The notes under the pieces: model-generated | Seen by the model: only the letters and a program-made list of their open reading frames with translations | Told to the model about the DNA's origin: nothing | Databases searched by the model: none | Made by a program: the position numbers and the translations under genes | Virus record (IMG/VR): IMGVR_UViG_3300036846_000743 | Coordinates: 124,001 to 188,000 of that record | DNA: 64,000 bases | Reading direction: 5' to 3' (one strand) | In this document: positions 2,894 to 50,156 of the stretch, one piece after another | Layout of the letters: each line of letters opens with the position of its first letter | Position numbering within the stretch: position 1 is the stretch's first letter

Positions 2894-3337
2894 TCAGATC
2901 TTGTGGAAAGACCGGGGTCGTGGCTGAGCCGCAAGTGCGGCATCCATGATCGCCTTGCGCCGGGCCAGATCGGCCTGCGTGTTGTAGGTGGCGATCAGTT
3001 CTTCGCGCTGCACATCCTGGGGATCGATATCCCCCTCCCGCATCTTGCCAATCCCGTAACCGATGCCACCAGCACCGAGAGCTGCGGCGCCGAGGCCGAT
3101 GGGCACTCCTGTCGTGAGAGCCCAGGTAGGAACCCCCGTGATGACATCCCCCGCAGTGGATATCACCTTTTTCCCGATGTCCTTCGCCATATCCATGAGG
3201 AAGCCGTTGGCACGCTTCTCGAGCCCGCAGGCGGCACGCACCTCGGCCTGTTCGGCAGTCAGGCCCTCCTCGGCACAGCGAAGAAGGAAGCCATATTTGA
3301 ACCCTTCCCTGGGGGTCATCGCAGCCCTCCGTGTCAC
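2894..3337 (-). CDS. Small glycine-zipper membrane/virion protein
   Basis: 147 aa; EKRA motif followed by GVPIGLGAAALGAGGIGYGIG; ATGA overlap with upstream gene. Confidence 0.75.
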   Translation of the reverse strand: MTRRAAMTPREGFKYGFLLRCAEEGLTAEQAEVRAACGLEKRANGFLMDMAKDIGKKVISTAGDVITGVPTWALTTGVPIGLGAAALGAGGIGYGIGKMREGDIDPQDVQREELIATYNTQADLARRKAIMDAALAAQPRPRSFHKI

Positions 3338-9158: not shown

Positions 9159-10385
9159 TCAGCGAAAGAGCGAATTAGCCACCCCGGTGATCAGTCCGCC
9201 CCAAACACCAAGGCTCTGGAGCTTCTCCTGAGCTTCCGGCTTGAGCCCGGCCAGCGCACCTAAGATCTTGCCTGCGGCCATGCCGGTAAGCCAGCCCTTG
9301 CCGGCGCCGATCGCTGCCGACGTCGCGACTTCGAACGGGCTCACCTCATTCGACTGGGTCGCCGCAGCCGTGCCTGACAGCAGGCCGGCCGTCGCGGCTG
9401 CCGCATAGGGCGGCGTATACATGGGCTGCTCGTTGGTCCCCCAGGGACTCTTGGTGCCAAAAGCATTGGCTGGGTTACGCACGTCATTCCAGATGACCTG
9501 GTTGAATGCATCAACTGGAATGCTGCGCATGAACAGGGCGCCAGTCTGGCCGAAGTCCTGGGCTGCTTTACGGAACCATGGGTTAATTCTGGGTTCAAGC
9601 GGATCAAGGACCGACGCTCGCTTGAGCCCGGGCAGCACAGGAGGCCCCATTTCCTCTTCGAGATCCTGATACGACACCTCGTGCTTCGGCAAGGGCGGAA
9701 GCGGCGTCCCTGGCGTACCCGGCGCACCGGTCGCTTCCGGCCCCATCAGGGGATGCCTGGTCCCCTGCATCCCCGGAAAGGCACCCAGTCCCTTGGCGCG
9801 TCGCTGAGCAGTCCACTGCCACAGCCCGGGCGCGGCACCCAGCCCGGCACCGGCCAGCCCCAGAGTGATTGGCAGGTGACCCCGCTCGGCATACTCCTCG
9901 GGGAGAAACTTCTCGGCCAGCCAGCCAGTACCATAGCCCAGGCCGCCGCCGATCAGGCTGTTGACGATCGCCGCGTGCAGCCCGGTGGGGTGCTTGCCAC
10001 CGATCAAGTGCTGGAGGGCAAAACCCGGGCGAGCCAGCGGCGCCAGATAGCCGTTGGCTGCCTTGACCAGGACCCAACCCTCGACAGGCGGCGGTGCAAT
10101 CGGCTCGACGTACAAGGCCACACCGGGCACATCCGGCACATCGGGCAGCGCCTCCCAGTCGGCCCGCTTCTCGATGTCGGCGACATGAGCCCAGGCGGTC
10201 CTGGTATCCGGATGCCACCACAGCTGATCCTCGGGGCCGGCAGCGCGCGTGGCCCAGGCTGCCAGCCGACATGCGGCCGGAGCAGCCTTCTTGTAGAGCG
10301 CCACGACCATATCGGGCACTCGCCGCCACGCTTCGTACTCGACGGCATCGACGATTGCGCCAAGCTGCTCTTCGAGCCGGCCCAT
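9159..10385 (-). CDS. Glycine-zipper protein with K-x-A motifs, putative virion protein
   Basis: 408 aa; motifs KKAA, EKRA, VKAA, LKRA, RKAA; Gly-zipper hairpins GGGLGYGTGW, GLAGAGLGAAPG, GAGKGWLTGMAAG. Confidence 0.75.
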   Translation of the reverse strand: MGRLEEQLGAIVDAVEYEAWRRVPDMVVALYKKAAPAACRLAAWATRAAGPEDQLWWHPDTRTAWAHVADIEKRADWEALPDVPDVPGVALYVEPIAPPPVEGWVLVKAANGYLAPLARPGFALQHLIGGKHPTGLHAAIVNSLIGGGLGYGTGWLAEKFLPEEYAERGHLPITLGLAGAGLGAAPGLWQWTAQRRAKGLGAFPGMQGTRHPLMGPEATGAPGTPGTPLPPLPKHEVSYQDLEEEMGPPVLPGLKRASVLDPLEPRINPWFRKAAQDFGQTGALFMRSIPVDAFNQVIWNDVRNPANAFGTKSPWGTNEQPMYTPPYAAAATAGLLSGTAAATQSNEVSPFEVATSAAIGAGKGWLTGMAAGKILGALAGLKPEAQEKLQSLGVWGGLITGVANSLFR

Positions 10386-10680: not shown

Positions 10681-13600
10681 TCAGCCGAAGAGACTCCAGG
10701 GCCGCTGATAGCCTGGCGACCCTACTCTGCGAAGAACTTCCCGGAATTGTTCGTTGAGTTCTTCTTTTCGCTCGGACATCCGCTCGAGCACCTCGTCGGC
10801 TGATGGCCGGGGCTTCTCGCCGAACACCTTGCCGAGCCAACCGGGCGGCGGCATCTTTGCAACAAACCGCTGTATCTTCACGTGTCGTAATTCCTCGGGC
10901 AAGCCTTCATGGCTGTCGAACCGCAGCCCGCGGCCGCGCGCCTGGCCAAGTCTGGCCTCATTCCAGTGCGGATCGAGTAGCTGGATCAGCTGGGTGCCCT
11001 TGGCCGAGATTCCCTCGGCGGCGGCTGGCCCCAGCAGGAGCACCCGGCTCCGGCCCGAGTTGTAGTCATCCAGCGCTTTCTTGCGGGCCTCTTCGGGCAT
11101 GCTGCCGTGGAATTGCCCGAACGGGATCTTGGCCTCAGCCAGGCCGGCGGCATAAGGCGTCAAGCCGGCGTCGATGAAGTTCGAATAGATAATGGCCTTG
11201 GCTCTCGGATCTTTCGCCAGAGTTTCTTGGAGATGGCTCATGGCCGACTGGAGCTTGGACGACGTCTGGAACGCCCGGATCGGGTCGTGCGACGAGTGAT
11301 ACGGATAGAGTGATAACGCAGCCTGACGTGGCCCCGTCATGAAGGCAGACAGATGGCCGATCTCCTGCTTGGTGAGCGGATAGTCGTTGGACAGCTTCCA
11401 GCGCATGAGCCAGGGGAGCTTGCCCCACATCAGCTTGTAGAAGTCCTGCTGCTCGGAGCCCATGTCGACTTCGACCCGCTCGTCCTTGGTCGAGACCCCT
11501 TCGGGAGTCCGGGACGGCTGATAGTCCACGTGCCCTTCGAGCATGCGCTCCAGGTCTTCCTCGTTCTGGATCTTGGGCACCTTGACCGGTTTGACGCCCT
11601 GGAGCCAGCCGAAGAACCCGGGATTGACCGTCTCGTTGCCAACATACTTCTTGGTGAACGCGCCCGGACTCATCTCCTCGCCGCGCAGGATCGATAGCGG
11701 CACGGCCAGATCACTGGGTGCGTTCACGATGGGCGTGCCCGAAAGCAAGATCCGGTGCGGGGCTCGCATGCCCAGCTCCATCGCGGCCCGGGCACCGGCC
11801 GACTGCGGGTTCCGGATCCGCTGAACTTCGTCCATGATGACGGTGTTCGGCGTGACCGATGGCTGCTTACCCATGCCAATCCCAGTATATGACATCACGT
11901 TGGTCGGTGTAGACTGATCAGTAAATTTACCTAATTCCTTGAGGTAATTACCTCTGAGGCTCGCCGGCACGACAGCTGTGAATGGCCCGCCGGTCTCCTC
12001 GGCGGCAGCCAGGCTGGCCAAGGACTTTCCTGAGCCCAGACCATGGTAGACCAGCAGGTTCTGGCCCTCGCCGACCCGTTTGGCCACGCGTTCCTGCTGG
12101 GGCTGGAGCCGGACCCAGGGCAGCAGGTCGGCCCGCTTCTCGCCCCAACTGTGACCACACCTGTTGCACTTACCGTCGTCCGGATCGCGCTCGAGCCGGG
12201 CATGGCACTTCGGGCAGCACTCGCCGGCCGGACACGGGTCGCCCTTCTCGTCGGTGGGGCTGCCGACGGCCCGGGCCCAGGCAGCAGCCTTCGCAGGCAA
12301 AAGCCTGATCCTGGACTTGTCGATCGGGTCTCCCTTCGGGGCCTTCTCTCCGTTATAGACCACGGCATCCAGGTCTTCCGGTGTCACGCGCACGGCCCTG
12401 ATATGACTCAGTCCCTCATCGATGTGCCGGGACAGGCGGTGCCGGCCATCCCAGAGCGTACCATCGATGCCAACCAGAATTGGCTTGTTCATGTTGACGG
12501 CAGCGTATCGCTTCTTCGAATAGCCAGTGCTTGCCGACCGGTTGGGCTTCTCGATGTCGCCCAGGGGAATGTTCTCGACCTTGCGCCCGGCCGTACGGCT
12601 GACCAGGTCATCGATGTCGTAGGTCTTGCCGCCCCTGCTGACGGTGTTGGTGCGAACCCAGTCGGCGACCTTGAGCCGACCACCGACCATGGCGAGGGAA
12701 GCATGGATCCTGAAGCCCGTCGGCTTGTGAGTCAGGCCGGCCATGTCCCGGATGGTCGAGTCGATCTTGAACTCACTGGGGCGCTCGTGGATCAGCCTGG
12801 AGAGGATCTGGTACTTGGCACGGTAATTCTTCCGGTCACTCTCGGCCTTGGCCAGCTTCAGGTCGGCCAGGGCCGGATGCACCTTGGCGGTCTTCTCTTC
12901 CTCTTCTTCGATCTGCTGGATGACCTCGGGGATGATCGCATTGGGTTTGCCCAAGAGCGATCCCTGGATCGCGTCCCACCATGATGGGGCCGGCGGCGGC
13001 AGCCGGCGACGACTGCGCGGGGTGACAACAGGAGGTGGCGGATCAGTGATCCCGAGCAGCCCGGCCAGCTTCAGCGTCGCAGCAGTGTCAGCATGGCTGG
13101 CCACCTTGTTGATGTCTTCGTGCAGGCCCAGGAACGACGGCACCCGCAGGGCGCCTGATGGCAGCTTCTGCTGCGCGCGGACCCGGGCCACCCGGCCGAT
13201 ATAAGCCGACGGGTCCCTGGCGATGTCGGCCAGGGTCTCGTCGCTGAAGCCCGTGCCAACCCGGCCCACGGTCTTGCCCGGCTCATGGCCGTAGGTCAGG
13301 CCGCCCACAGTCGCAGCCCGCTGGCCTTCGCCCGGAAAAGTCCCGGTGACGTGTACATCGTGTTCCTCGAAGAGCTTGGCCTTCGAGGGCACGCCGGTTC
13401 TGGGATGATAGACAATTCCCTCTTCGGTAAGAGGATGTTCACCCGATCGGATCATGTCCCAGAGCTTGGTTGCGCTTGCTGGATCTCTGAATTCCTCGGA
13501 GACGTGGAACTTATCTGAAGGCAGGTGTCCAGCAATCTCTTCAAGCATTCGCCGACGATCTGATCGGGATGTAACGGCGGGATCGATGGGCTTCTTGCCG

Positions 13601-16600
13601 TACTGCTGAACGTCGTAGAGCATGTTGCGAAGCGTGAGGCCCTTTGCCTTCTGGAGCTGGAGACTGCGCGCAATACTGGAATTAAGTAGCTGGCCGACAT
13701 CCTGGGGACCGGTTCGGCGAGTTGTGACTTCAGGATCGCCTGGAAGGCCAGCAGCCCCGCTGCCACGCGGTGTTCCGTTGGCGTGTACCGTTTCCAGCCC
13801 TTCATGGCCCGTACCCACATCCGGACCACCATCAGGCGATCTTCGTCCAGTCTCCGTATCCGGTTGCGTTGCCTTACTTCCTCCTCCTGGTTGTAGTCGT
13901 GAGGCATACAGCTCGCCCTTCAAGATCGATCCTTCGAGGTGCCTGGGGACCGGGACCTCGGGGCGCCCGCCAAACAGGCGTTCCGTGTGGAAGATGGGCC
14001 GGCCGGTTGTCTTCGACGTCCTGAAGGATAACGCCTCGGCATGACCGCCTGCTAGTCTGATGAGCTGACTGGCGCCATCGACCTTGGCTTCTACCGTGTC
14101 GCCTTCCTGCATAGCTTTCAGGGCTGGCTCGACATCTTCGGGCGCGATCTTCTTGTAGCGAACTTTTTCGTAAGGGACCTGGTCCCGAGGGGTCGTGTTC
14201 ATGAGCAGCCAGTTCTTGTTGCCCCAGCCCTTGGGCCGGACCAGCGTGAACCGCTCGGGATGTCTCTGATGGGCCGTCGTGAAGTGTATTGACTCAGGAG
14301 TGGCTTTCGTGATCAGGATCTGGCCCTTGGTATGGGTCTTGACCGTGCCCTTGCCGTAGCCCTGGGGAATTTCTCCCTCGAAATTCCCGTACTCATGCCG
14401 ATGCACGGGCTGCTGCACGGCAAGATGTCGTTCCCCCGGTGGGGGTACTCCCTTGCGCGCGGCCCAGGAGAGCAGGCCCATGTCCGGGTTGCCGAACCTG
14501 ATGTCATGATGAAGACCCGCGCGCTCGGCTTCGTGCCTTTGCACTATGTAGTCCAGCATCTGGCCAACCTGGAGCTTATCAAGCTGGCCCATGTTGGACC
14601 TGGACGGCAGCCCGGGAGCGTAGTCGGCTTCGGCCTTCTTGCCCAGCTGGTAAGCCAGCGCCGGCGCTGCGACGCCACCAGCGATCATGCCGAGCATCGA
14701 CATGAGATTGCGGCGGCGCTCCTGCCGGCGCCGCTCGTAGTAGTCAAGCTCATCCTCGTCGTCGGGCGACACGACCCCGCCCAGCGCGCCGCCGAGCAAG
14801 TGACCACCCAGGAGGCCGGCGCCAGCGGCCCCGGCCAGGGTCAAGACCCGGTTGCGGATCTCGGGATCGGCCCAGCTCTCGCGTACCCCTGCCCACATGC
14901 CGGCCTGGGTTGCCGGCCGCGCCGCCGCCAAGAAGTCGGCTGGCCTGGGCGACCCGGCCGCCCTGGCAGCCACCGCGATGGGATCCTGCGATAGCGCCGC
15001 TCCGGGGCCAAGGCCCAGCCAGCTGCGGGCCTGCTGCTGTACCGTGTTGGCCGTCTGTCTGGCGATCTGGGACTGCATCTCCGGGCGGCTCGCGATATCG
15101 ACGGCCATGCTCTGGAACTCGGGCTTCTGGGCCATCTCGAGCAGCTTTGCTTGCAGCGCCGGATTGTTTGCCGCCTGCGAGATAACTTTCTGCCCTTCCG
15201 GAGTGCTGGCGAAGTTCGTGAGCGCCTGCACGACTTCGGGCTTCTGGGCCATCTCGCCCAGCACTTTCTGTCCCTCCGGGGTGCTGGCATAGTTCGTGAG
15301 CGCTCCCGTGACTTCGGGCTTCTGGGCCATCTCGCCCAGTGTTTTTCGCCCTTCCGGAGTACCGACATACTTCGTGAGTGCCCCTACGACTTCGGGCTTC
15401 TGGGCCAGCCCGCTTATGGTCTTCTGTCCCTCCGGGGTACCAACATACTTCGTGAGTGCCCCCATGACTTTGGGCTGCTGCGCCAACCCGCCCAGCGCCT
15501 TCTGTCCCTCCGGGGTACCGGCGTAGTTGCCAATGGCCTCCGTAACTGCGGGCTGCTGCGCCAGCCCGCCCAGTGTCTTCTGTCCCTCCGGAGTACTGGC
15601 GAAGTTGGTGATGGCCTCTGTAACTTCGGGCCGCTGGAAGAACCCGCCTATGGTCTTCTGCCCCTCTGGGGTGTTGGCGTAATTGGTGATGGCCCCCATG
15701 ACTTCGGGCTTCTGGAAGAGCCCGCCTATGGTTTTCTGCCCTTCTGGAGTGCTGGCATAATTCGTGATCGCTTTCGTGACTTCGGGCTGATCAGCCAGTC
15801 CAGCCAAGGTCTTTTGCATATCCGGATTGGTCAAGGACTGGGTAAACGCTTTCTGTACTGCTGGGTTGGCCGCGGTATTCGCAAGGAACTGCTGCATCTT
15901 GGGATCGTTCAGGGTCTGCGACAGCATCGCCTGGCCCTGGGGATTGTTCAGCTGCTCCCCGATGAACTTCTGCGTCTCGGGACTGGTCACAAGCTGTTGC
16001 ACGCCCTTCTGGACAACCGGACTATCCATCACGTGCTGCCGCATCCGGGGATCGGTGAGTGTCCGGGTGAGCGGCTGAACGATCGGGCTGGTCATGCTGG
16101 CAATCGGGTTGGCCTTCATCTCGGGCGTGTACTTGGCTATGGCCTCATCGACAGCCTTCTGGTAAATGGGCGCGGGATCCTCCTTCATGGGGATGAACTG
16201 GCCGGCCGCACTCATCGCGAGACCGAACGGCGAGGCCAGCCGGGCAGCATCCACGAAGCCCATGGTATTGGGATACTTCTGGCGCGCCGTGTAATAGTCG
16301 TGCCGCAGGAACGGGATCGTGGACTTGGCAGCCACGTCGCCCACCATCTTGCCGATGGCCGACTCGTCGGGCTTGCCGGTAACCCAGCTCACTCCCGGAA
16401 TATTCCGGGAAGCCCAGCTCACTCCTGGAATTCTGTGCAGCAGCTGGGTTGCCACCGGGCCGCGCAGGCCCCGCAGTTCCTCCTTGGCCCACGGCTGCTT
16501 CAACTCCTTGATGCCTGCTTCCGACAATCCCAGCCCCCTGCCCAGCATGGTCGCTTCCTGGCTCTCGAAGACCGGCTGCGTCGCCATGTTGTAGCCGGCC

Positions 16601-19600
16601 AGGCCCAGGCCAGTACCGGTCGCAGCAGTGCTCCCGTAACGCAGCGTCTGGCCCAGCGCCTGCCGCTGCCAGTCCCAGCGACGCTGCGGTGGCTGCGGGG
16701 CAGGGTTATTCAGGAGCTTACTCCACGGAGTAGTCGCAGCTTGCGGAACGCCACCTTTCGGGATGGGGACTTTGGGAGTGACTTCCCGGTGCAGGCCCGG
16801 GATCTGCGGGCTGAAGGTGAACCTGGCAGCATTGCCGGCGCCGATAAGAGGGCGCTTCCAGCCCTCGCCACTCACGCCCCAGAACTGACCCGGCGCCGCG
16901 CCGGACATGTGATACGCGCCACGGCCTATGGCACCAAGGCCCCCCTTGGCCCGTGACCACAGTCCTCCCGCCTCCTTGGTCATCGCCACCTTGAGATTGG
17001 GATCAATCCTGGCGACGTTGTGAACGAGCCCCGGCATCCGCCTGGTCGCAGCACCCTCGATAACCTGCCAGTCCGGCGCTGCAAACATATCCTTCCAGTA
17101 CTGCTCGTCGTCACCAAGGTTGCTCGGATTCAGGGTGTTCCACCATGAGTTGACGTGGCCCTTGAACCAGTCCAGCGCCTTCTTGGCCTCGGCCGGCGAT
17201 GTCACTTCCCTGCCGGTGTTCTGGGCATATACCCGCTTGACGAGGGCCAGCCGGGGATCAAGCTCGTCGGGCGAAAAGAGATAGTTCAGGTTATGTTTCG
17301 GTCCGAATGACGGCGTACCGCCCAGCGTCTTGACCAGCTTCTGCCCCGACGACGTGATCTCCGGATCAATCTTCGCGAGATTGGCCAGCTCCTTGGCCGT
17401 GCCTCCACGCTCAAGGACCCGCTTGATCGGCGCCATCTGCATTCCCGAGTGCGTCAGCTCGTGCCCCACGGTTTGCTGCTGATCGTGCACATTGACCAGG
17501 CTGTCCTTCGGCATCGTGATGACTGCCGGTGGCGCTGCTGGCCTGTTGACCATAGGCGTGGTCACGCCGGCGTAAGTCTCGTTTTCCGCGCCCGGTATCG
17601 CGATCCCTTTAGGGAGCTTGACGGTCTTCCCGGGCACCTCGACGACCGGTACCTTGGTGTGAAGATCCTCAGCCTTCCAGGGAACCGAGGGGATCGACGG
17701 AGCATAGGGCACCTGCTTGCCTTCCGCTCGCCGGATGACCCCTTCGACACCGCCCTCCATCTTCCCGTAATACGGATCGAGGCTCTCGGCCAGGCTCTTC
17801 ATCTTCGCCCCGGGAGGTACCACGTAAGGCGCATCCGGCGCGGGAGCTACAGGCGGCTGCTGCTGTTGCTGCTGCTGTAGCCGCTGTGCCTTGGCCCTGC
17901 CGATGTAGTAGGCCCCGCCCAGGCCACCCAGACCGGCGCCGTAGATCACGTCGCGTAACGGGTCTTCGCTGCCGAAGAGCTTCCCGAGCCCCCAGCCGCC
18001 CAGGCCGCCGGCACCAGCGCCGATCAGCATCGGAGCATAGTCCTTGAAGTCGCCTTGCTTCTCGCCAAGCCGGGCCAGCCAGCCGACCGCGCGGCCCCTG
18101 TCACCGCGCTGCCGCAGCCGATCCATGAACTCGACCAAAGGATCGCTATCTTCGCCATCTTCGTCATCATCTTCGCCAGCGCCGTCTGGCTTGGGGAAGG
18201 ATATCCGGGTGATGGAGATTCGCTGTATCGAGATCGGTATCCTGATCTTACGTCCGCCGTTATCTTCGCCATTATGTACATCGTCGCTAGCCCCACTGTG
18301 TACATCTTCGTCATCATCTTCGCCGTCGGTGGTTGTAGCTACTTTGGCTATCGAGACGGTATTCCCAGCATCTCCTCGACCGTCCAGCCATTGTGCAACC
18401 GATCGTAGAGGGTGCTCACGGGAATACCCAGCTGCGATGCCCATTGACCGATTGTCTGTTTCTTTCCGTGGAAGGAGAACTGGCGCCGTGGCTGCTTTGG
18501 TCGTGAAAGCGGTATTCCCCGTGACAATCGATAAGTCACGTGTGCCCGCGAGCAACCCAGCAGACGAGCTGCGTCCGCCGTACTCATCTTCTGGCCGTCG
18601 AATTCGACCCAGTGAGTCGTCCGTCGGGGCCGACCACGTGGCGTTAGAATTGCCTCCTCGTCTGTCCAGCCGAGCCTCACTATGCGTCCGCGGAGTACCG
18701 TCGGATGCAAGCCAGTCCGTTCGGCCCACTCGGCGATCGTCCGAGTCTCGCCCTGGCATGTCAGCAGCCGATTGGTTCGCGTATTTCGTGCTTGCGCTTT
18801 CCGTGATGCCCAAATGCAGTTTGCTTTGGAATAGCCCTTGCTGTTTTCCTTTCGCTCGAGGGTCATTCCCGCCGGCCGATCTCCCATGTCCCGGTAGAAC
18901 GCCATGAAGCGCCGCTGCCAACTTTGACACACCGTAATTCCGCGCCCGCCATAATTCTTGTAACCGCGGCTCGTCGGATTCAGACAACGCTCCTTCATCT
19001 TGCACCAAGTCGTGTACGCTCGCGTCTTGACCAGACCGTGATACTGCCGTTTGATCATTGGCCGCCTTGCTGACTTCGTTAGGTTTGAGAACATTGCGAC
19101 GTCTTACACCTATAGTGATGTGAAATTCATGATCACCATTGGGCAAAGGAGTCAGACCATAGCTCTTCCGCAGGGCCTTGAGATCGGAAGAGCTAACCCG
19201 TACAAACCACGCCTTGGACATCTCGGGCCAGCCCTTGGGTTCGACTTCCATGATCGGTCCAAGTTGATAACTGAACGGATGACCACGTTCACTTATCTTG
19301 TCAGGACCACCGATCTTTTTGACATCCTGATCGGTGAGGGCGCTAATATGGGCGTTGAGCACGCCGTCTCGCAGCGGCAATTCAGCGCCTGGCGCTTCGA
19401 GCGCATCGAATAATCCCCTAACAAGTGCATTGGGGACGCTGACCAAACCCCAGCCGCTCGCACTGACATATAACCGACCATGGAGTATGGGTACCGCCAC
19501 CGGGGCGCCGCCTGCCTTGATCAACATACCGTAAGCTGCGGCGACCTGGTAATAGTCCAGGTCTTCGGCTGCCCGGCGGCGAGCCAGTGTGGCCGGATCG

Positions 19601-19614
19601 ATCGTGAGCGACAT
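10681..19614 (-). CDS. Giant multidomain polyvalent protein/polyprotein (2H phosphoesterase, Gly zippers, HExxH peptidase, helical repeats, LigD phosphoesterase, ATP-dependent DNA ligase, ParB-like, Zn finger, SNF2 helicase)
   Basis: 2977-aa uninterrupted ORF, SD AAGGAGG; domain motifs listed in the sub-features. Confidence 0.9.
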   Translation of the reverse strand: MSLTIDPATLARRRAAEDLDYYQVAAAYGMLIKAGGAPVAVPILHGRLYVSASGWGLVSVPNALVRGLFDALEAPGAELPLRDGVLNAHISALTDQDVKKIGGPDKISERGHPFSYQLGPIMEVEPKGWPEMSKAWFVRVSSSDLKALRKSYGLTPLPNGDHEFHITIGVRRRNVLKPNEVSKAANDQTAVSRSGQDASVHDLVQDEGALSESDEPRLQELWRARNYGVSKLAAALHGVLPGHGRSAGGNDPRAKGKQQGLFQSKLHLGITESASTKYANQSAADMPGRDSDDRRVGRTDWLASDGTPRTHSEARLDRRGGNSNATWSAPTDDSLGRIRRPEDEYGGRSSSAGLLAGTRDLSIVTGNTAFTTKAATAPVLLPRKETDNRSMGIAAGYSREHPLRSVAQWLDGRGDAGNTVSIAKVATTTDGEDDDEDVHSGASDDVHNGEDNGGRKIRIPISIQRISITRISFPKPDGAGEDDDEDGEDSDPLVEFMDRLRQRGDRGRAVGWLARLGEKQGDFKDYAPMLIGAGAGGLGGWGLGKLFGSEDPLRDVIYGAGLGGLGGAYYIGRAKAQRLQQQQQQQPPVAPAPDAPYVVPPGAKMKSLAESLDPYYGKMEGGVEGVIRRAEGKQVPYAPSIPSVPWKAEDLHTKVPVVEVPGKTVKLPKGIAIPGAENETYAGVTTPMVNRPAAPPAVITMPKDSLVNVHDQQQTVGHELTHSGMQMAPIKRVLERGGTAKELANLAKIDPEITSSGQKLVKTLGGTPSFGPKHNLNYLFSPDELDPRLALVKRVYAQNTGREVTSPAEAKKALDWFKGHVNSWWNTLNPSNLGDDEQYWKDMFAAPDWQVIEGAATRRMPGLVHNVARIDPNLKVAMTKEAGGLWSRAKGGLGAIGRGAYHMSGAAPGQFWGVSGEGWKRPLIGAGNAARFTFSPQIPGLHREVTPKVPIPKGGVPQAATTPWSKLLNNPAPQPPQRRWDWQRQALGQTLRYGSTAATGTGLGLAGYNMATQPVFESQEATMLGRGLGLSEAGIKELKQPWAKEELRGLRGPVATQLLHRIPGVSWASRNIPGVSWVTGKPDESAIGKMVGDVAAKSTIPFLRHDYYTARQKYPNTMGFVDAARLASPFGLAMSAAGQFIPMKEDPAPIYQKAVDEAIAKYTPEMKANPIASMTSPIVQPLTRTLTDPRMRQHVMDSPVVQKGVQQLVTSPETQKFIGEQLNNPQGQAMLSQTLNDPKMQQFLANTAANPAVQKAFTQSLTNPDMQKTLAGLADQPEVTKAITNYASTPEGQKTIGGLFQKPEVMGAITNYANTPEGQKTIGGFFQRPEVTEAITNFASTPEGQKTLGGLAQQPAVTEAIGNYAGTPEGQKALGGLAQQPKVMGALTKYVGTPEGQKTISGLAQKPEVVGALTKYVGTPEGRKTLGEMAQKPEVTGALTNYASTPEGQKVLGEMAQKPEVVQALTNFASTPEGQKVISQAANNPALQAKLLEMAQKPEFQSMAVDIASRPEMQSQIARQTANTVQQQARSWLGLGPGAALSQDPIAVAARAAGSPRPADFLAAARPATQAGMWAGVRESWADPEIRNRVLTLAGAAGAGLLGGHLLGGALGGVVSPDDEDELDYYERRRQERRRNLMSMLGMIAGGVAAPALAYQLGKKAEADYAPGLPSRSNMGQLDKLQVGQMLDYIVQRHEAERAGLHHDIRFGNPDMGLLSWAARKGVPPPGERHLAVQQPVHRHEYGNFEGEIPQGYGKGTVKTHTKGQILITKATPESIHFTTAHQRHPERFTLVRPKGWGNKNWLLMNTTPRDQVPYEKVRYKKIAPEDVEPALKAMQEGDTVEAKVDGASQLIRLAGGHAEALSFRTSKTTGRPIFHTERLFGGRPEVPVPRHLEGSILKGELYASRLQPGGGSKATQPDTETGRRSPDGGPDVGTGHEGLETVHANGTPRGSGAAGLPGDPEVTTRRTGPQDVGQLLNSSIARSLQLQKAKGLTLRNMLYDVQQYGKKPIDPAVTSRSDRRRMLEEIAGHLPSDKFHVSEEFRDPASATKLWDMIRSGEHPLTEEGIVYHPRTGVPSKAKLFEEHDVHVTGTFPGEGQRAATVGGLTYGHEPGKTVGRVGTGFSDETLADIARDPSAYIGRVARVRAQQKLPSGALRVPSFLGLHEDINKVASHADTAATLKLAGLLGITDPPPPVVTPRSRRRLPPPAPSWWDAIQGSLLGKPNAIIPEVIQQIEEEEEKTAKVHPALADLKLAKAESDRKNYRAKYQILSRLIHERPSEFKIDSTIRDMAGLTHKPTGFRIHASLAMVGGRLKVADWVRTNTVSRGGKTYDIDDLVSRTAGRKVENIPLGDIEKPNRSASTGYSKKRYAAVNMNKPILVGIDGTLWDGRHRLSRHIDEGLSHIRAVRVTPEDLDAVVYNGEKAPKGDPIDKSRIRLLPAKAAAWARAVGSPTDEKGDPCPAGECCPKCHARLERDPDDGKCNRCGHSWGEKRADLLPWVRLQPQQERVAKRVGEGQNLLVYHGLGSGKSLASLAAAEETGGPFTAVVPASLRGNYLKELGKFTDQSTPTNVMSYTGIGMGKQPSVTPNTVIMDEVQRIRNPQSAGARAAMELGMRAPHRILLSGTPIVNAPSDLAVPLSILRGEEMSPGAFTKKYVGNETVNPGFFGWLQGVKPVKVPKIQNEEDLERMLEGHVDYQPSRTPEGVSTKDERVEVDMGSEQQDFYKLMWGKLPWLMRWKLSNDYPLTKQEIGHLSAFMTGPRQAALSLYPYHSSHDPIRAFQTSSKLQSAMSHLQETLAKDPRAKAIIYSNFIDAGLTPYAAGLAEAKIPFGQFHGSMPEEARKKALDDYNSGRSRVLLLGPAAAEGISAKGTQLIQLLDPHWNEARLGQARGRGLRFDSHEGLPEELRHVKIQRFVAKMPPPGWLGKVFGEKPRPSADEVLERMSERKEELNEQFREVLRRVGSPGYQRPWSLFG
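10750..12135 (-). other. SNF2/SF2 helicase domain of polyprotein
   Basis: LQPQQ Q-motif, HGLGSGKS Walker A, IMDEVQRIRN, LLSGTP, IIYSNF, AEGISAKG, DPHWN, QARGRGLR. Confidence 0.9.
12150..12260 (-). other. Zinc finger in polyprotein
   Basis: CPKCHARLERDPDDGKCNRCGH (CxxC...CxxC). Confidence 0.7.
12340..12660 (-). other. ParB/Srx-like domain of polyprotein
   Basis: KPILVGIDGTLWDGRHRL, matching the ParB-N DG.HR signature. Confidence 0.7.
13100..14190 (-). other. ATP-dependent DNA ligase (adenylation + OB domains) of polyprotein
   Basis: EAKVDG (motif I), LKGELY (III), MLYDV (IIIa), EEGIVY (IV), KAK (V); OB fold with GRVGTGFSDE and ALRVPSF. Confidence 0.85.
13452..13907 (-). CDS. Possible nested +1-frame ORF within the ligase insertion
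   Basis: Over ~13700-13907 codon bias favours this frame (CAC GAC TAC AAC CAG GAG GAG) over the host frame (TCA CGA CTA CAA CCA GGA GGA). Confidence 0.4.
   Translation of the reverse strand: MPHDYNQEEEVRQRNRIRRLDEDRLMVVRMWVRAMKGWKRYTPTEHRVAAGLLAFQAILKSQLAEPVPRMSASYLIPVLRAVSSSRRQRASRFATCSTTFSSTARSPSIPPLHPDQIVGECLKRLLDTCLQISSTSPRNSEIQQAQPSSGT
14200..14620 (-). other. LigD-type 3'-phosphoesterase (PE) domain of polyprotein
   Basis: YIVQRHEAERAGLHHDIRF..LLSWAARKG..RHLAVQQPVH..EYGNFEGEIPQGYGKGTV matches the LigD_N consensus. Confidence 0.9.
15142..15765 (-). repeat. Eight tandem 78-nt (26-aa) coding repeats
   Basis: TNYAxTPEGQKTxGxLAQKPEVxxAL; first and last TPEG at 15750 and 15204 are 546 nt = 7x78 apart; degenerate 13-aa units extend to ~16050. 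Confidence 0.9.
17040..17700 (-). other. Zincin-like metallopeptidase domain of polyprotein
   Basis: VGHELTH (HExxH at 17449-17463) with downstream YLFSPDELDPRL as candidate third ligand. Confidence 0.6.
18348..19058 (-). mobile_element. HNH-type homing endonuclease gene overprinted in the +1 frame inside the polyprotein ORF
   Basis: WCKMKERCLNP..YKNYGGRGITVC..W..FMAFYRDMGDRPAGMTLERKENSKGYSKANCIWA..Q.RN, then two HTH-like repeats (GETRTIAEWA, GKKQTIGQWA); likely start ATG 19058 after AAGGCGG (track start 19094). Confidence 0.85.
19090..19510 (-). other. 2H phosphoesterase domain of polyprotein
   Basis: Two H-x-S/T motifs: NAHIS (19348) and FHITI (19120), with spacing typical of LigT/Acb1-like enzymes. 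Confidence 0.7.
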
Positions 19615-23751: not shown

Positions 23752-26700
23752 TCACTGTGCTTGGGCAGCCTCGACAACCTGGAGCAGATCATAAACGTCG
23801 GCCGGCGTGAGCGTCGGGTTCCCGACCGCATCCTGCACCATCTTGGTGGCTGCGGCCGGGTCTTGCTGCCATTTGCTTCGCACGGCGTTGAATTTTGTTG
23901 TGAGCGGTATCCTGCCACTCCAGATGCCACCCTTCGCCGCGTCTTCGGCTAGCATGCTCTTCACGCGCTGGGTTTTGTCAGCCATCGGCAGGGCCCTAAG
24001 ATTGGCCACGGTCGCCGGATCTTTGAACGAGTCCATGGTGATCTCGTCAGGAACCGTCGCTGTGGCTTGCGCCGGGGCCACTGGGGCTGCCGGTTCTGCC
24101 GCCGCTGGTGCTGGCGCAGGTGCTGCCGGAGCTGCCGGAGCTGTCGGAGCTGTCGGAGCTGTCGGCGTGGCTGCTGGTGTTGTGGCTGGAGCTGTCGGTG
24201 CTGGCGCAGGTGCCGCTGGCGCTCCTGTTGGAGCCGGAACCGCCGGGGTCGTTGCCGGCGCCGCTGGCACTCCGGCTGCGGCTGCTCCTGCCGCCCCTGC
24301 GCCCGCTCCTGTCGCTGCCGTTCCCGGTGGCGGCTTGAGGGCCCCCGCCTGGGTACCACCTGCGGCGAGATGGCTCAGGCCGAACCCGCTCAAGATGTTA
24401 TTGATCAGATCCTGCACACCGCCGGGCAGCATGTTCCCCTGGTGCAACCCGCCGATGACGCCGGCGCCACCCAGAAGCGTCATCAGCATCGAGCCCATGC
24501 CGCCTTCGCCCATGAACGAGTTCATGAGCCCGAAGAGAGCTACTGGCAAACCGAGACCGACCATCAGCTGGCCAGCCGTGCCCAGGCCGTCCCACATGCC
24601 CTTGACGGCCGAGATCGGGTCGGGATACTCACCTGCCTCGGTCTTCTGCTTGGCCTCATCGGCTAGCCCTGTCTGCGGGTTCTGGACGGCCTTGGCCATT
24701 CCCTGCGGTCCCGTGTTCTGCTCCTTCATCGCCTGCATGTTGCCGTAATACGGCTCCTGCTGGGCCTTCAGCAGCAGGAATGACTGCGAGGCATTGTGGG
24801 CCGCATCCGTGGCCTGGGCAGGGTCGACGCCGGCCTTCTGCATGGCCACCATATCCTCCGGAGTCAGCGGCTCCTGCTGCGTGATCCGCATCGATGTCTC
24901 CGGAGGCAGCTTCTTAGCCATGATCTCGAGTGTCTCGTTAGCCTGCCGGTTCACGTGGCCCACACCCTCCGCACGACCTGGCGAACTCATCCACTTTCTC
25001 GTATCCGTGGGATTGTAGTCCGGACCGGAAAGATCGATCTTGCCCTTCGCCTGCATCCCGGGCACTGTTTTGTCGACGAAATTCTTCCGCTGCGCAGTAT
25101 ATTGGTTGATCACCTCGCTCCGGACCGTCTTTTCGGTCTGAGCGATCTGCTCCGGGGTCAACGGTACGCCCGTGTTGATCAGAGATTGCTCGTTGGCGGC
25201 ATTGACCCGTCCCTGCGCGATCTGGCCTGCATAGGTGCCCCACTGCTCCATGTCCAGGCCGGCCGGCGTCGGCCCTTTGCCCAGCCGCTGGTCCTCCTGC
25301 ATCCGTTCCACCTGGCGGGCCGTCATGTTGCCCTTTCCCGGCGTCAATCCCTCCATCATGGCGCCCCATGTTGCAAAGCCGCCCGGCACGGATAGCTCGG
25401 GAATGGCTTTCGCCGCCTGTATCGCCCGGCTGAGCATCGGAATACGGCCGAGCAGCCCCGCCGCGGCCGGGGCGGCAGCGCCGGCCTCACCAGCCGCAGC
25501 ACCACCTCCTGCACCGCCCAGGCGACTGTAGCCCGCAATGTTGGCGATCAGGTCGTACTGCTTCGCCAGATCCGAAGCGCCCCCGGCAATGTATTGCATC
25601 GGAGTCGATGTGCCCGGAGCTGTCGCATAGTCTTCGAGATTCTTGGACCAGCGCGGCATGACCTGGCCCGAGAAGCTGAGCCCGCCCGGCCTCGCAGCTC
25701 GCGCATCCTGGGGGCCATAAGCCGCAAACGGGATCGACGCGAAGTCCCGCCAGGCCGACCGGGAATTCGTCAGGCTCGGGTCCATGTTGTAAAGGTCGGA
25801 GGCTGCGCCAAGGACCTGACCGTAGAGCGCAGGATAAGTCTTGGTCAGCACGTTCTTGGTAGTCCCGAGCGCATAGCTCTGGAGCGTCGGATCGTTCTGT
25901 GCCGACGAAAAATTCAGGCGCTGTGCCAGCGCCGGGTTCATGCCTTCATTGATCCGCTTGGCCATCAGCTCCTGGTCGGTCTTGACGCCGGAAACCGTGG
26001 GCATCCACTGCGTGGTACCCATTTCCTTGCCGAGGGCTTCGGTGGCCGCATCGAGGACCTCTTGCTGGCGAGCATCACGGAGATTGCGCATCTCCAGCTG
26101 ACCCGGAACCGGCCGATTGGCCCCGGCCACACCAGCCGCTTCACCCCCGGCCGGTTCCGCAGCCAAGACCCTCTGGTAGTTGGCGCGGGCATCGACTTGC
26201 TCCTCCGGAGAGAGACCAGGGGTGCTCAGAGCGCGGCTGGCCTCATCAACCTGCTTCTGCCACATCCGGCGCATCACGATATCCCTGTTGGAGGGCGCCC
26301 TCGCCATGTCCTTCTGGATCTGGGTCATGCCGGCATAAGGGTCGACGGGCGGTGCCGGAGCCGCAGCCGCAGCCGGTTCCGGTGCCGCAGCCGGTGCCAC
26401 GGCCCTGGCGCCCGGCGTGGCTGCTGCCACCGATGCTGGCGGTGCCACTCCTGGTGCTGGTGCCTGCGGCGGCACCGGCGCCTTGGGCGCCGCTGTTCCG
26501 GTCACGCCCGGCACAGGGGGTATGCCCTGTGCCGCGGTCTGCGGCGTAGCCTGCTGACCAGCCCGCTGCGCCGCGGCTGCGGCATCTTCCGCGCCGCCGC
26601 CAGTACTCTGAAGTGGATTGACCTTGACCTTCTTGATCGGGTCCTGGGCGGCCTTGGTCAATCCCGACGTGGCTCCGGCCTCAAGCCCCGCCGCACCGAC

Positions 26701-27585
26701 GAAAAAACGTGTCCACTCGTCGGCGATATCATCGGAGAGAGCCGCACACTTCTCGACAGCCATCCGGACCTCCGTGCCGGTAAGACCTCGCTCACCGCAG
26801 CGCGCCAGGAAGCCGATCTGGATCGGGAACTCGGCCGCCAGCTTGACCATGGCCGCCTTGGGATGCATGCCCTCCAGGAGCGCCTGCTCTTCCTCTTCCT
26901 GCTCGCGATCACGCTTGTTCTTGTACCACAGGCCCAGCCCGCCCAGGCCCAGACCAATCCCGAGCGCAGGCAGATAATGCTTCGGCTGCACGAGCCAGTC
27001 CCGGCCCTTGCCGACTGTGCTTGCGAATTGGTCCATGACCCCCGGCACCTTGGGAGTGGGATTGACGGCTGCATCCGTGGCAGCCCGCTGCGCCGCTTCC
27101 TCCTGGAGCTTCTTGTAGCCGGCCCGAATTTTCATGTCGGCATTTTCACCGCCTCCGACAATCGCGTTCCAGGCTTCGCCAGCATGAGTCTTTTCAGCGA
27201 TCTGGTTGCCGGCAGTTCGAAAGGCTTCCGGCAGCGCACTCCCGATCTCACGAACCGCGCGCGGCGCATCGGCGATGCCCTGGCCAAGCTGCCGGAACGA
27301 CTGTGCCGCCGTGTTGTAGGCTTGCGGCATCCTGGGACCAACCGCGCTGCCCAGCGCGGTACCGGCTTCCGGCACCCCGAACAGGTAACTCCCGCCGAGT
27401 GCGCCACCCAGGGCGGCACCTCCGAGCGCGCCGGTCGTCCGACGGTTTCGCTGTATCCAGGGACTGGGCTTTGACCAGGCCCCCAGCCGCCGCATCCAGC
27501 CAGGAGCGGCAGACTTGACCATGCCGTCCGCGGCCAGGACATTCCAGGCCGATGCATAAGGGCGAGGACACGTCATGACGCTCAT
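23752..27585 (-). CDS. Large Ala/Gly/Pro-rich glycine-zipper protein, putative virion/ejection protein
   Basis: 1277 aa; motifs VKSA, PKAA, VKLA, EKCA, TKAA; several Gly-zipper TM-like segments; PAT/APA linker near C-terminus. Confidence 0.8.
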   Translation of the reverse strand: MSVMTCPRPYASAWNVLAADGMVKSAAPGWMRRLGAWSKPSPWIQRNRRTTGALGGAALGGALGGSYLFGVPEAGTALGSAVGPRMPQAYNTAAQSFRQLGQGIADAPRAVREIGSALPEAFRTAGNQIAEKTHAGEAWNAIVGGGENADMKIRAGYKKLQEEAAQRAATDAAVNPTPKVPGVMDQFASTVGKGRDWLVQPKHYLPALGIGLGLGGLGLWYKNKRDREQEEEEQALLEGMHPKAAMVKLAAEFPIQIGFLARCGERGLTGTEVRMAVEKCAALSDDIADEWTRFFVGAAGLEAGATSGLTKAAQDPIKKVKVNPLQSTGGGAEDAAAAAQRAGQQATPQTAAQGIPPVPGVTGTAAPKAPVPPQAPAPGVAPPASVAAATPGARAVAPAAAPEPAAAAAPAPPVDPYAGMTQIQKDMARAPSNRDIVMRRMWQKQVDEASRALSTPGLSPEEQVDARANYQRVLAAEPAGGEAAGVAGANRPVPGQLEMRNLRDARQQEVLDAATEALGKEMGTTQWMPTVSGVKTDQELMAKRINEGMNPALAQRLNFSSAQNDPTLQSYALGTTKNVLTKTYPALYGQVLGAASDLYNMDPSLTNSRSAWRDFASIPFAAYGPQDARAARPGGLSFSGQVMPRWSKNLEDYATAPGTSTPMQYIAGGASDLAKQYDLIANIAGYSRLGGAGGGAAAGEAGAAAPAAAGLLGRIPMLSRAIQAAKAIPELSVPGGFATWGAMMEGLTPGKGNMTARQVERMQEDQRLGKGPTPAGLDMEQWGTYAGQIAQGRVNAANEQSLINTGVPLTPEQIAQTEKTVRSEVINQYTAQRKNFVDKTVPGMQAKGKIDLSGPDYNPTDTRKWMSSPGRAEGVGHVNRQANETLEIMAKKLPPETSMRITQQEPLTPEDMVAMQKAGVDPAQATDAAHNASQSFLLLKAQQEPYYGNMQAMKEQNTGPQGMAKAVQNPQTGLADEAKQKTEAGEYPDPISAVKGMWDGLGTAGQLMVGLGLPVALFGLMNSFMGEGGMGSMLMTLLGGAGVIGGLHQGNMLPGGVQDLINNILSGFGLSHLAAGGTQAGALKPPPGTAATGAGAGAAGAAAAGVPAAPATTPAVPAPTGAPAAPAPAPTAPATTPAATPTAPTAPTAPAAPAAPAPAPAAAEPAAPVAPAQATATVPDEITMDSFKDPATVANLRALPMADKTQRVKSMLAEDAAKGGIWSGRIPLTTKFNAVRSKWQQDPAAATKMVQDAVGNPTLTPADVYDLLQVVEAAQAQ

Positions 27586-29488: not shown

Positions 29489-29489
29489 G

Positions 29490-38636: not shown

Positions 38637-38870
38637 TTATGTTCGGTCCAGGCCAAGCATCGCGGCCCCCGCCCGGATGCCCAGCAGCTCCGAGACGGAC
38701 CTGGCCTGCTTCTCCAGCTCGGCCACGGCCTGGGCGCCCTTCACGTGCTCGGGCAGCTTCTTGATGCTCGGAGTCTTGTGTGCCCATTCCTCGCAATTCC
38801 AGCCTTTGGCCTGACCGCGGCCCTTCATTGCGAAGCATTTTTTTGCCTGGGCTTTACTTGTAAACGGCAC
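38637..38870 (-). CDS. Small phage protein of MPF[KT]SKAQ type
   Basis: MPFTSKAQ N-terminus, EWAHKTP..KKLPEHV, EKQA motif. Confidence 0.7.
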   Translation of the reverse strand: MPFTSKAQAKKCFAMKGRGQAKGWNCEEWAHKTPSIKKLPEHVKGAQAVAELEKQARSVSELLGIRAGAAMLGLDRT

Positions 38871-47026: not shown

Positions 47027-47039
47027 TCACCACCCCGGC

Positions 47040-49976: not shown

Positions 49977-50156
49977 TCACCCTGTCTTCAGCTTATCCTT
50001 GACCATGTCGGAGTCTCGCTTGTGCTGATCTTGCTGATCCAGCTCTTCCACAGTCTTCCTGGGCTGAACCGCAGCCTCCTTGGGGCTCAGTGACTTGGGA
50101 TTGCTAAGATCAGGCGTGATGTCAGGACCAATCACGCCGCGTTTTTCCATGCTCAT
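49977..50156 (-). CDS. Small hypothetical protein (59 aa, below track cutoff)
   Basis: MSMEKRGVIGPDITPDLSNPKSLSPKEAAVQPRK...; ATGA overlap and SD GGGAGG. Confidence 0.6.
   Translation of the reverse strand: MSMEKRGVIGPDITPDLSNPKSLSPKEAAVQPRKTVEELDQQDQHKRDSDMVKDKLKTG

Follow-up and report, generated by a model that had tools for sequence, protein, structure and literature searches.

The DNA examined here (the window) is a 64,000-nucleotide stretch, positions 124,001 to 188,000, of the IMG/VR record IMGVR_UViG_3300036846_000743, which represents an uncultured 226-kb phage. It encodes on the minus strand a 2977-residue protein (10681..19614) in which many unrelated enzymatic domains are joined in one chain. 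An initial annotation noted that the tripeptide Lys-x-Ala or Lys-x-Gly marks most of its domain boundaries and recurs in other virion-like proteins, and inferred that a K-x-A-specific maturation protease releases enzymes and membrane peptides from precursor polyproteins. This raises the question of whether the placement of K-x-A is non-random and, if so, which enzyme might recognize it.

K-x-A in the giant protein: frequency and placement

Pfam searches of the giant protein identified 2H-SAK (3e-8), LigD_N (5e-12), ligase OB, SNF2 and Helicase_C domains, and PHROG searches identified helicase and ligase. Together with the mosaic architectures of 12 homologues of 1716-3517 aa, which carry rearranged, inserted and lost modules, this places it among the polyvalent proteins described by Iyer et al. 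2017 (PMC5512222). All 13 motif instances named in the initial annotation were present (IKAG 33, SKAA 183, AKVA 424, EKQG 519, LKVA 875, TKEA 880, GKKA 1659, NKVA 2170, LKLA 2182, EKTA 2241, LKVA 2315, AKAA 2442 and EKRA 2493), and every one is conserved as K-x-[AG] in homologues even where one flank is unrelated.

The frequency test that had been proposed for the motif failed for this protein. Using global shuffles and 50-residue local shuffles, K-x-A was found 18 times against 16.9 expected and K-x-[AG] was depleted (23 against 34.5). Across the rest of the window the observed/expected ratio was 1.04. Placement, however, was far from chance. Among the giant protein and its 12 homologues, 57 of 104 well-supported homology breakpoints lie within 8 residues of a K-x-A, against 12.7 expected (p=2.5e-25). 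K-x-A was the best of all 400 a-x-b motifs, the next best reaching only p=4e-5, and the runners-up, AxD and AxA, extend the motif to K-x-A-A-D. Breakpoints in homologous proteins are not fully independent observations, but after merging junctions whose two flanks are both alike, 51 of 88 junction classes still carried the motif against 10.7 expected. A test for avoidance of internal sites in the polyvalent family was uninformative, as many joins are not detectable as breakpoints with only 13 sequences.

Individual junctions of the giant protein

The module limits deduced from the homology breakpoints suggest the following products if the protein is cut at K-x-A: a leader (1-35), the 2H phosphoesterase (36-185), a module of residues 186-426, an acidic module (427-521), a glycine zipper plus HExxH module (522-877), a repeat-rich module (883-1661), a LigD phosphoesterase plus ATP-ligase (1662-2172), two small modules (2185-2243 and 2244-2317), a ParB-like module (2318-2444), a zinc finger (2445-2495) and an SNF2 helicase (2496-2977). 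All the junction coordinates below are on the minus strand.

The first site, K33-A-G (19510..19518), lies at the end of a roughly 33-residue N-terminal leader before the 2H domain, and K-x-[AG] was found at residues 31-36 in all 8 homologues that have this N-terminus, including the distant L015 and L016. K183-A-A (19060..19068) ends the 2H module and is conserved as SKAA(A)D in homologues P0002, P0004, P0011, P0013 and L016, with unrelated sequence downstream. K424-V-A (18337..18345) ends a 241-residue module that is absent from P0004 and P0011; in these two, the KAA that ends the 2H module is followed directly by the acidic module, which in the window follows KVA 424. K519-Q-G (18052..18060), at the start of the glycine zipper plus HExxH module, aligns with KQA in P0003 and KVA in P0006. 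At the end of the HExxH module (K875-V-A and K880-E-A, 16969..16992), K and A are invariant in all 7 copies of the module, 8-10 residues after the conserved RMPGLV, and the downstream sequence differs between copies.

At K1659-K-A (14632..14640), the start of the LigD-PE/ligase module, K-x-A-(A)-D-Y-A-P-G-L-P follows at least 6 unrelated upstream contexts (breakpoint support of 7). K2170-V-A and K2182-L-A (13063..13107) delimit the end of the ligase module and a 12-residue spacer (breakpoint support of 9), with INKVA and KLAG(L/F)FG conserved in homologues and a predicted pLDDT below 50 in this stretch. At the K2241-T-A junction (12886..12894), EEKTA, EKAGA, EKQGA or EKQNA precedes the HPALADL module in all homologues. 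K2315-V-A (12664..12672), before the ParB-like module, has a breakpoint support of 4, and GR(L/V/A)K(V/A/S)A is conserved with different downstream modules. K2442-A-A (12283..12291) ends the ParB-like module, with LLPAKAA conserved; in P0006 and P0007 it is followed 3 residues later by the KLA that precedes the helicase, and the zinc-finger module is absent. Finally, K2493-R-A (12130..12138) lies immediately before the helicase module (DLLPW...), with a breakpoint support of 5. K-x-A, or K-x-S/G-A, is kept in front of the helicase in about 17 metagenomic relatives at only 45-55% identity and with different GC content.

The motif also marks fusion and fission points, as stand-alone helicases keep a 20-40 residue leader ending in K-x-A. 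At the DNA level only AAG-NNN-GCN is shared between junctions, so selection acts on the protein, and a DNA-level recombination signal was rejected. Some K-x-A are conserved inside folded domains, for example helicase K2845 and K2253, which lies in a pLDDT-97 helix, and the motif alone therefore cannot be sufficient for cutting. An AF2 model of residues 2100-2560 was poor (pLDDT 59) and gives only weak support for linkers, placing only 4 of 6 junction sites in low-confidence stretches.

K-x-A in other proteins of the window

The picture was mixed for the other proteins. The glycine-zipper-rich protein of 1573 aa (33891..38612) contains 18 K-x-A among 76 Lys, exactly as initially counted, against 10.1 expected (p about 0.01), as well as 9 K-x-G. 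A scan of IMG/VR with this protein found only the window's own contig, but its family is module-shuffled, and K-x-G (36 against 12.9) and K-x-A (49 against 24.7) rank first and second of 400 motifs at its breakpoints. It is a second candidate polyprotein, one that would yield membrane peptides. The 376-aa protein with glycine-zipper segments (1340..2470; 7 K-x-A, 3.0 expected) and the 408-aa protein (9159..10385; 6 K-x-A, 2.3 expected) were marginal (p about 0.02); in relative L015 the homologue of the latter is fused to the helicase C-terminus through K-x-A joins. The proteins at 2894..3337, 38637..38870 and 49977..50156, in which the initial annotation had also noted the motif, were at chance. 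The 1277-aa protein (23752..27585) is depleted overall but has K-x-A at residues 24, 243, 248, 279 and 311, then none in the remaining roughly 960 residues. A 332-aa protein not listed initially (42711..43709) has 8 K-x-A (2.7 expected), five of them in tandem KPAEHHA repeats at the C-terminus. The portal protein homologue of 664 aa (47952..49946), which matches the portal gp204 of Salmonella phage Arash by tblastn (2e-7), has no K-x-A at all against 3.8 expected, but has one KQG-AA at residues 638-642 (nt 48027..48035), 27 residues from its C-terminus.

A candidate prohead protease encoded outside the window

Pfam and PHROG scans of about 68 window proteins found glycosyltransferases, a sulfotransferase, a topoisomerase, endonuclease VII and HNH but no capsid, protease or terminase, and megablast of the window against cultured phages gave no match. 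The left end of the window (1..1329, minus strand) contains the start of a multisubunit RNA polymerase beta-like gene that runs off the window and matches Arash gp206 (tblastn, 8e-35). It is the first gene of a block leading to the head-morphogenesis module. We walked the source contig to the left and, as the initial annotation had suggested looking for, found a candidate prohead protease of 499 residues about 16 kb from the window (contig positions 106808-108307).

The assignment of this protein as T4 gp21-like rests on weak fold and profile matches. Its AF2 model has a pLDDT of 80, and the best PDB match by Foldseek is T4 gp21 (5jbl), with a probability of 0.93 but an E-value of 0.07 and a target-normalised TM-score of 0.39 over 117 columns. 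Matches in BFVD were stronger and include phage G Gp19 (1e-8), listed as a head maturation protease in PMC12484599, and many entries annotated as prohead protease. The Arash orthologue gp222 matches the PHROG family phrog_18299 'head maturation protease' at 2e-6, while the protein of the window's phage matches only phrog_2774, of unknown function. No Pfam hit was found, and PDB sequence searches with Arash gp222 and with the protease profile found nothing relevant. His103 and Ser164 are invariant in 50 homologues and may be catalytic, although no sequence alignment to gp21 could be obtained.

The candidate protease gene lies three genes upstream of the major capsid protein gene, whose product matches Arash gp226 (5e-35) and phrog_2522 (2e-7), and is flanked by genes for acidic proteins rich in the motif. 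The protease itself carries 12 K-x-A against 2.5 expected, neighboring scaffold-like proteins carry 13 against 3.7 and 9 against 2.5, and two further head-module proteins carry 5 against 1.8 and 4 against 0.9. In 119 protease homologues K-x-A is the most over-represented a-x-b pair (1629 against 454, ratio 3.6) and sits in conserved columns, 99% at reference residue 39 and 92% at 243, with the sites at 243 and 451 falling in stretches with pLDDT below 50.

The major capsid protein has a single K-x-A, at residues 16-18. In 132 capsid-protein representatives this column reads K (85%) - x - A (85%) - A (46%) - D (45%), and 125 of 132 have K-x-A in the first 45 residues, whereas the mature part is depleted (76 against 134.7 expected). 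The sites align between the window's phage and Arash at about 27-36% identity in the capsid protein, the protease, the gp220-like protein and the gp218-like protein, and Vibrio phage D181 shows the same pattern. Interestingly, the preference for A/G/S/D after the Ala is seen alike in junctions, capsid protein and protease self-sites. Arash virions contain the helicase homologue Gp217 and RNA polymerase subunits, as shown by mass spectrometry (PMC10585845), although the Arash helicase has no K-x-A leader.

A model for processing of the polyvalent protein

Taken together, these data support the inference made in the initial annotation and favor, with fair but not full confidence, a model where K-x-A followed by a small or acidic residue (most often A, then G/S/D) is the recognition motif of the phage's own prohead protease. 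During head assembly, this enzyme would trim the short N-terminal leader of the major capsid protein, chop the scaffold-like proteins and itself, and cut cargo proteins built into the prohead. The 2977-residue protein, with K-x-A at almost every join, would be such a cargo, and cutting would release about a dozen separate products, among them the 2H phosphoesterase, HExxH module, LigD-phosphoesterase/ligase, ParB-like module, zinc finger, SNF2 helicase and several glycine-zipper membrane peptides, which would then be ejected into the host with the DNA. That cleavage occurs at all is inferred, as no experimental cleavage data exist for any member and the Arash supplementary table holds sequences but no peptides from which it could be read. 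Packaging of the giant protein is likewise inferred, as is the position of the scissile bond after the Ala, by analogy with the P3-x-P1 sites of the T4, phiKZ and herpesvirus proteases.

One cannot rule out that the HExxH (zincin-like) module embedded in the giant protein cuts at K-x-A in cis or in trans, without any part played by the prohead protease. Autoproteolytic release by embedded metallopeptidases was predicted for polyvalent proteins by Iyer et al. (PMC5512222), and the module has an invariant HELTH, is itself always followed by K-x-A, and is carried by several homologues, twice in P0002. This is unlikely, as its peptidase nature rests on HExxH alone, with no match in Pfam (where MPTase-PolyVal was not detected), PHROG or PDB sequence searches. 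The module has no tblastn match in any cultured phage, including Arash and D181, which nevertheless show the K-x-A pattern in their head proteins. In addition, homologues P0005, P0007, P0008, P0009 and P0010 keep K-x-A joins without the module in the same polypeptide, and the strongest enrichment and conservation is found in the capsid protein, the scaffold-like proteins and the gp21-like protease.

It is similarly unlikely that K-x-A(A) is an uncleaved linker or module-exchange signature, tolerated at domain ends and surviving recombination, with the giant protein working as one polypeptide. Modules are clearly shuffled by recombination, some K-x-A sites lie in structured helices, and some polyvalent proteins in other systems, such as the N4 virion RNA polymerase, ArdC and TraC1, are delivered uncut (PMC5512222). 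However, AAG-NNN-GCN is too little for homology-driven exchange, the same extended motif sits at the N-terminal leader of most of the diverged capsid proteins and is depleted in their mature part, and it is concentrated 3- to 5-fold in the protease and scaffold-like proteins, which are not shuffled multidomain proteins. An origin by chance and composition in a 62% GC genome rich in Ala and Gly, with boundaries chosen after the motif had been seen, would fit the overall counts in the giant protein, the window and several small proteins but is rejected by the independently defined BLAST breakpoints (p about 1e-24 to 1e-25) and by retention of the motif in low-GC relatives with 6-9% Ala.

Comparison with known systems and implications

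Among the closest known systems is that of T4, in which gp21 appears to cleave after L/I-x-E in gp23, gp22, gp24, internal proteins and Alt. As in T4, the protease gene sits in the head module, the motif is short with two fixed positions separated by one free residue, and sites are found at the capsid leader, in scaffold or core proteins, in the protease and at the end of short leaders on putative cargo. Here, however, the fixed residues are Lys and Ala, the capsid leader is only about 16-30 residues, the 499-residue enzyme has a long helical C-terminal half, and the putative substrates include a polyprotein with about 12 internal sites. The phiKZ gp175 and SPN3US gp245 proteases, which cleave after S/A/G-x-E or A-x-E, belong to jumbo phages with virion RNA polymerase and many ejected proteins processed by the prohead protease, some with multiple motif copies (PMC10052503), but in SPN3US nearly all cuts remove N-terminal propeptides, whereas here the sites lie between full-size enzymatic modules along one chain. 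Herpesvirus assemblin, probably of the same fold class as T4 gp21, would likewise have Ala at P1 followed by a small residue, with a hydrophobic P3 in (V/L)-x-A and only the scaffold and the protease itself as substrates.

The giant protein resembles the polyvalent proteins of Iyer et al. in its disparate domains, its extensive domain shuffling and the location of its gene next to virion genes. That work predicted delivery into the host and proteolytic release but proposed embedded peptidases and gave no cleavage motif, whereas here a defined tripeptide marks the joins and points to the prohead protease. Polyproteins of eukaryotic RNA viruses, an analogy also drawn by Iyer et al., are similarly cut at short conserved junction motifs into separate enzymes, but the protease here would be a separate capsid-maturation enzyme of a tailed dsDNA phage and cutting would occur inside the prohead. 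No earlier description of a K-x-A prohead-protease motif was found, although our literature coverage was incomplete.

Prohead-protease motifs are known for only a few phage groups (T4, phiKZ/SPN3US, HK97-like). It is somewhat more likely than not that a large, mostly uncultured clade of big phages, with at least 800 protease and 1000 capsid-protein representatives and including Arash, D181 and possibly Bacillus phage G, uses a prohead protease with Lys-x-Ala specificity, and that in part of this clade the protease doubles as a polyprotein-processing enzyme. Giant polyvalent proteins would then be modular cassette trains in which any enzyme module ending in K-x-A can be spliced in by recombination, packaged through one shared leader and released as an independent ejected effector. 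This would give the first defined processing code for polyvalent proteins and would allow mature virion and ejected-protein sets to be predicted from sequence alone. It would also explain how proteins with a dozen unrelated enzymes can work, as polyproteins cut inside the capsid and not as single giant enzymes, turning a 2017 bioinformatic hypothesis into one that can be tested directly in Arash, and why modules can be shuffled so freely, each carrying its own cut site. It also flags the 2H/ligase/helicase/ParB set as likely early-acting ejected counter-defence enzymes.

A giant polyvalent protein with K-x-A at its module joins

The window covers positions 124001-188000 of a 226,073-bp IMG/VR viral contig, and nearly all of its genes lie on the minus strand. 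The ORF at 10681..19614 (minus strand) encodes 2977 residues in which Pfam detected 2H-SAK, GerD-like repeats, LigD_N, ligase OB, SNF2 and Helicase_C, while PHROG detected helicase, ligase, and two families of unknown function. An invariant HExxH module is also present. This is the architecture that was named a polyvalent protein by Iyer et al. 2017 (PMC5512222). The public gene call (P0001) starts at Met391 and gives a protein of 2587 aa. However, the upstream 390 residues carry the 2H-SAK domain and the leader and are conserved in homologues, making the long ORF the better call. The GerD core match (2.5e-20) comes from an array of about 35-residue repeats (TPEGQKT.GGLAQKPEV...) at window ~15100-16040 (minus strand), residues ~1190-1500 of the giant protein. 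No K-x-A occurs between residues 883 and 1658, although this stretch is about a quarter of the protein.

The initial annotation had proposed that K-x-A marks most domain boundaries of the giant protein and recurs in other virion-like proteins. Every motif instance it listed is present, and its count of 18 K-x-A among 76 Lys in 33891..38612 (minus strand) is exact. Frequency alone, however, does not support the claim, as the giant protein has 18 K-x-A against 16.9 expected and 23 K-x-[AG] against 34.5, and the rest of the window has an observed/expected ratio of 1.04. Interestingly, K-x-G is strongly under-represented in the polyvalent family: over 13 proteins, K-x-[AG] outside junction zones is 206 against 269 expected, while K-x-A alone is not depleted. 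This remains unexplained but could reflect glycine-rich segments poor in Lys or the avoidance of a secondary site.

The decisive evidence came from homologues. Twelve relatives of 1716-3517 aa, from contigs up to 231 kb, are rearranged module by module, and the ends of the BLAST alignments fall on K-x-A. To quantify this, we collected all internal alignment ends from an all-against-all comparison, clustered them into breakpoints, and asked for each of the 400 a-x-b motifs how often a breakpoint lies within 8 residues of it. K-x-A scored 57 of 104 against 12.7 expected (p=2.5e-25). The next motifs, AxD (4e-5) and AxA (5e-4), simply extend it to K-x-A-A-D. After merging junctions with both flanks alike, 51 of 88 classes carried K-x-A against 10.7 expected. 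Breakpoints in related proteins are not fully independent. The DNA shares only AAG-NNN-GCN.

Individual joins illustrate the pattern. The ligase-phosphoesterase module always begins K-x-A-(A)-D-Y-A-P-G-L-P, after at least six unrelated upstream sequences, and the helicase always begins K-x-A-D-L-L-P-W. In the two homologues where the zinc-finger module is missing (P0006 and P0007), the KAA that ends the ParB module and the KLA that precedes the helicase lie three residues apart. Where the giant protein has an extra 241-residue module after the 2H domain, that module is bracketed by KAA and KVA. All homologues with this N-terminus have K-x-[AG] at residues 31-36, about 12 residues before the 2H domain, and this is a leader. 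The variants K-x-G-A-A and K-Q-N-A-A occur at some joins.

Distribution of the motif among relatives

A metagenome scan with the helicase module uncovered 30 loci at 27-84% identity. In relatives at 45-55% identity, many of them low in GC and Ala, the helicase is still preceded by K-x-A, or by K-x-S/G-A, and the joins to other modules (2H, zinc finger, P-loop kinase, NUDIX, glycine-zipper proteins) carry K-x-A too. Modules also occur as separate genes, and several stand-alone helicase reading frames carry K-x-A 20-40 residues upstream of the helicase. In L015, a locus from a 229-kb relative, the homologue of the separate window gene 9159..10385 (minus strand) is fused to the helicase C-terminus. 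In the same relative (L015:9270-12325), the 2H module (ending KAA) and the helicase (preceded by KIA) lie in different reading frames about 60 nt apart, representing either two genes or a frameshifted fusion.

The 1573-aa glycine-zipper protein encoded at 33891..38612 (minus strand) has 23 homologues that are also module-shuffled. At their breakpoints, K-x-G (36 against 12.9) and K-x-A (49 against 24.7) rank first and second of the 400 motifs. A 332-aa protein (42711-43709, minus strand) owes its K-x-A excess (8 against 2.7) to five tandem KPAEHHA repeats at its end, followed by PEHK repeats. At least six glycosyltransferase genes and a sulfotransferase gene (43802-47927, 21424-23736, 27843-30377, minus strand) are interspersed among the portal, glycine-zipper, and large structural-looking genes, suggesting glycan modification of virion or host-surface components. 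A 164-aa protein (4695-5189, minus strand) ends in a PEP-CTERM motif (Pfam 1.9e-6), a sorting signal of exosortase systems of Gram-negative bacteria that is unusual in a phage and may hint at the host.

A probable prohead protease encoded near the capsid gene

Nothing in the window resembles a protease by Pfam or PHROG. The nearest cultured relative of the helicase module is gp217 of Salmonella phage Arash, at 32% identity. The gene lies among virion genes, and Arash structural proteins looked rich in K-x-A. The Arash portal and RNA polymerase beta subunit match window 47952..49946 (minus strand) and the left edge of the window, respectively. We then proceeded to walk the contig leftwards. In order, we found split RNA polymerase subunit genes, an 863-aa gp218-like protein, a 457-aa gp220-like protein with 9 K-x-A against 2.5 expected, a 367-aa glycine-zipper protein, a 499-aa orthologue of Arash gp222 (tblastn 1.5e-32) with 12 K-x-A against 2.5, a 450-aa acidic protein with 13 against 3.7, a 137-aa protein with 5 against 1.8, a 205-aa protein with none, the 299-aa major capsid protein, and a 142-aa protein with 4 against 0.9. 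The capsid protein matches Arash gp226 at 5e-35 and phrog_2522 'major head protein' at 2e-7, and has a single K-x-A at residues 16-18. The RNA polymerase beta-like gene (window 1-1329, minus strand, and positions 719-6221 of L037, a locus on which genes were called during the walk) carries a roughly 350-residue insertion after the GDK motif. The insertion begins with Cys and has a weak LAGLIDADG_3 match (7.6e-4), so it looks like an intein. As the ORF ends soon after the insertion and the rest of beta continues in the next ORF, the subunit appears both intein-interrupted and split.

The AF2 model of the 499-aa protein has a mean pLDDT of 80, and its best PDB match is the T4 capsid assembly protease gp21, with a probability of 0.93 but an E-value of 0.07. 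BFVD matches include phage G Gp19 (1e-8) and many proteins annotated as prohead or capsid maturation protease. Arash gp222 matches PHROG 'head maturation protease' at 2e-6, and phage G gp19 is listed as a head maturation protease in PMC12484599. Pfam and PDB sequence searches, however, found nothing. Support for the fold is moderate, and we therefore regard this protein as a probable, not proven, gp21-type prohead protease. His103 and Ser164 are invariant. One homologue (P0022) is 863 aa long and carries Hint_2 and LAGLIDADG_3 Pfam domains, an intein inside the protease gene.

K-x-A in the protease, capsid and scaffold-like proteins

To determine if the motif behaves like the site of such an enzyme, we examined 119 homologues of the protease, taken from at least 801 hits. 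K-x-A is the most over-represented of all a-x-b pairs (1629 against 454) and occupies conserved columns, with 99% at reference residue 39, 92% at 243, and 82% at 413 and 470. The sites at 243 and 451 fall in the two low-confidence linkers of the model. A search of 1.84 billion representatives with the capsid protein gave 1093 hits. In 132 full-length representatives, at most 50% identical to each other, one N-terminal column reads K (85%) - x - A (85%) - A (46%) - D (45%), and 125 of 132 have K-x-A within the first 45 residues. The part after the site is depleted, with 76 against 134.7 expected, and none of 500 shuffles was as low.

Pairwise alignments between the window's phage and Arash, at about 27-36% identity, place K-x-A at the same positions in the capsid protein, the protease (two sites), the gp220-like protein (six sites), and the gp218-like protein. 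Vibrio phage D181 repeats the whole pattern. Bacillus phage G (gp14-gp28) shows a weaker version: its protease gp19 has 8 K-x-A against 2.5 expected, gp20, gp21, and gp22 have K-x-A at residues 3-12, and the portal has one at 18-20, but the capsid protein gp27 has none. The motif may extend to phage G in modified form. The residue after the Ala is A, G, S, or D in the junctions, the capsid protein, and the protease self-sites alike. These are the known signatures of T4 and phiKZ/SPN3US prohead-protease motifs (PMC10052503), with different letters.

A model for processing at K-x-A

The best-supported reading, although it rests on comparative inference without any observed cleavage product, is that the prohead protease recognizes K-x-A. 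By analogy with the P3-x-P1 sites of gp21, gp175/gp245, and assemblin, it would cut after the Ala. It would process the capsid protein, the scaffold-like proteins, and itself, and would also dissect cargo proteins built into the prohead. That cargo would include the giant polyvalent protein, the glycine-zipper proteins, and possibly the portal tail at KQG-AA and the N-terminal parts of 23752..27585 (minus strand). Packaging of the helicase homologue and the RNA polymerase subunits in Arash virions is published (PMC10585845), whereas packaging of the giant protein itself is inferred. Not every K-x-A can be a site, as K2845 in the helicase and K2253 are conserved inside folded regions. Accessibility must therefore matter. 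The model of the multi-junction stretch is poor.

One alternative is that the embedded HExxH module processes the polyprotein itself. This is unlikely as the module is unrecognizable as a peptidase beyond HExxH, is absent by tblastn from Arash, D181, and all other cultured phages, and is missing from several homologues that keep the joins. An uncleaved linker, or a scar left by recombination, is also unlikely and cannot explain the capsid, scaffold, and protease data. Chance is excluded by the breakpoint statistics of the polyvalent and glycine-zipper families and by the protease and capsid protein families.

Prohead-protease maturation and polyvalent proteins are both known, but we found no earlier description of this motif in a literature search that was not exhaustive. 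What would be new here is the K-x-A specificity, its spread across a large and mostly uncultured clade, and its use as the punctuation of shuffled polyproteins.
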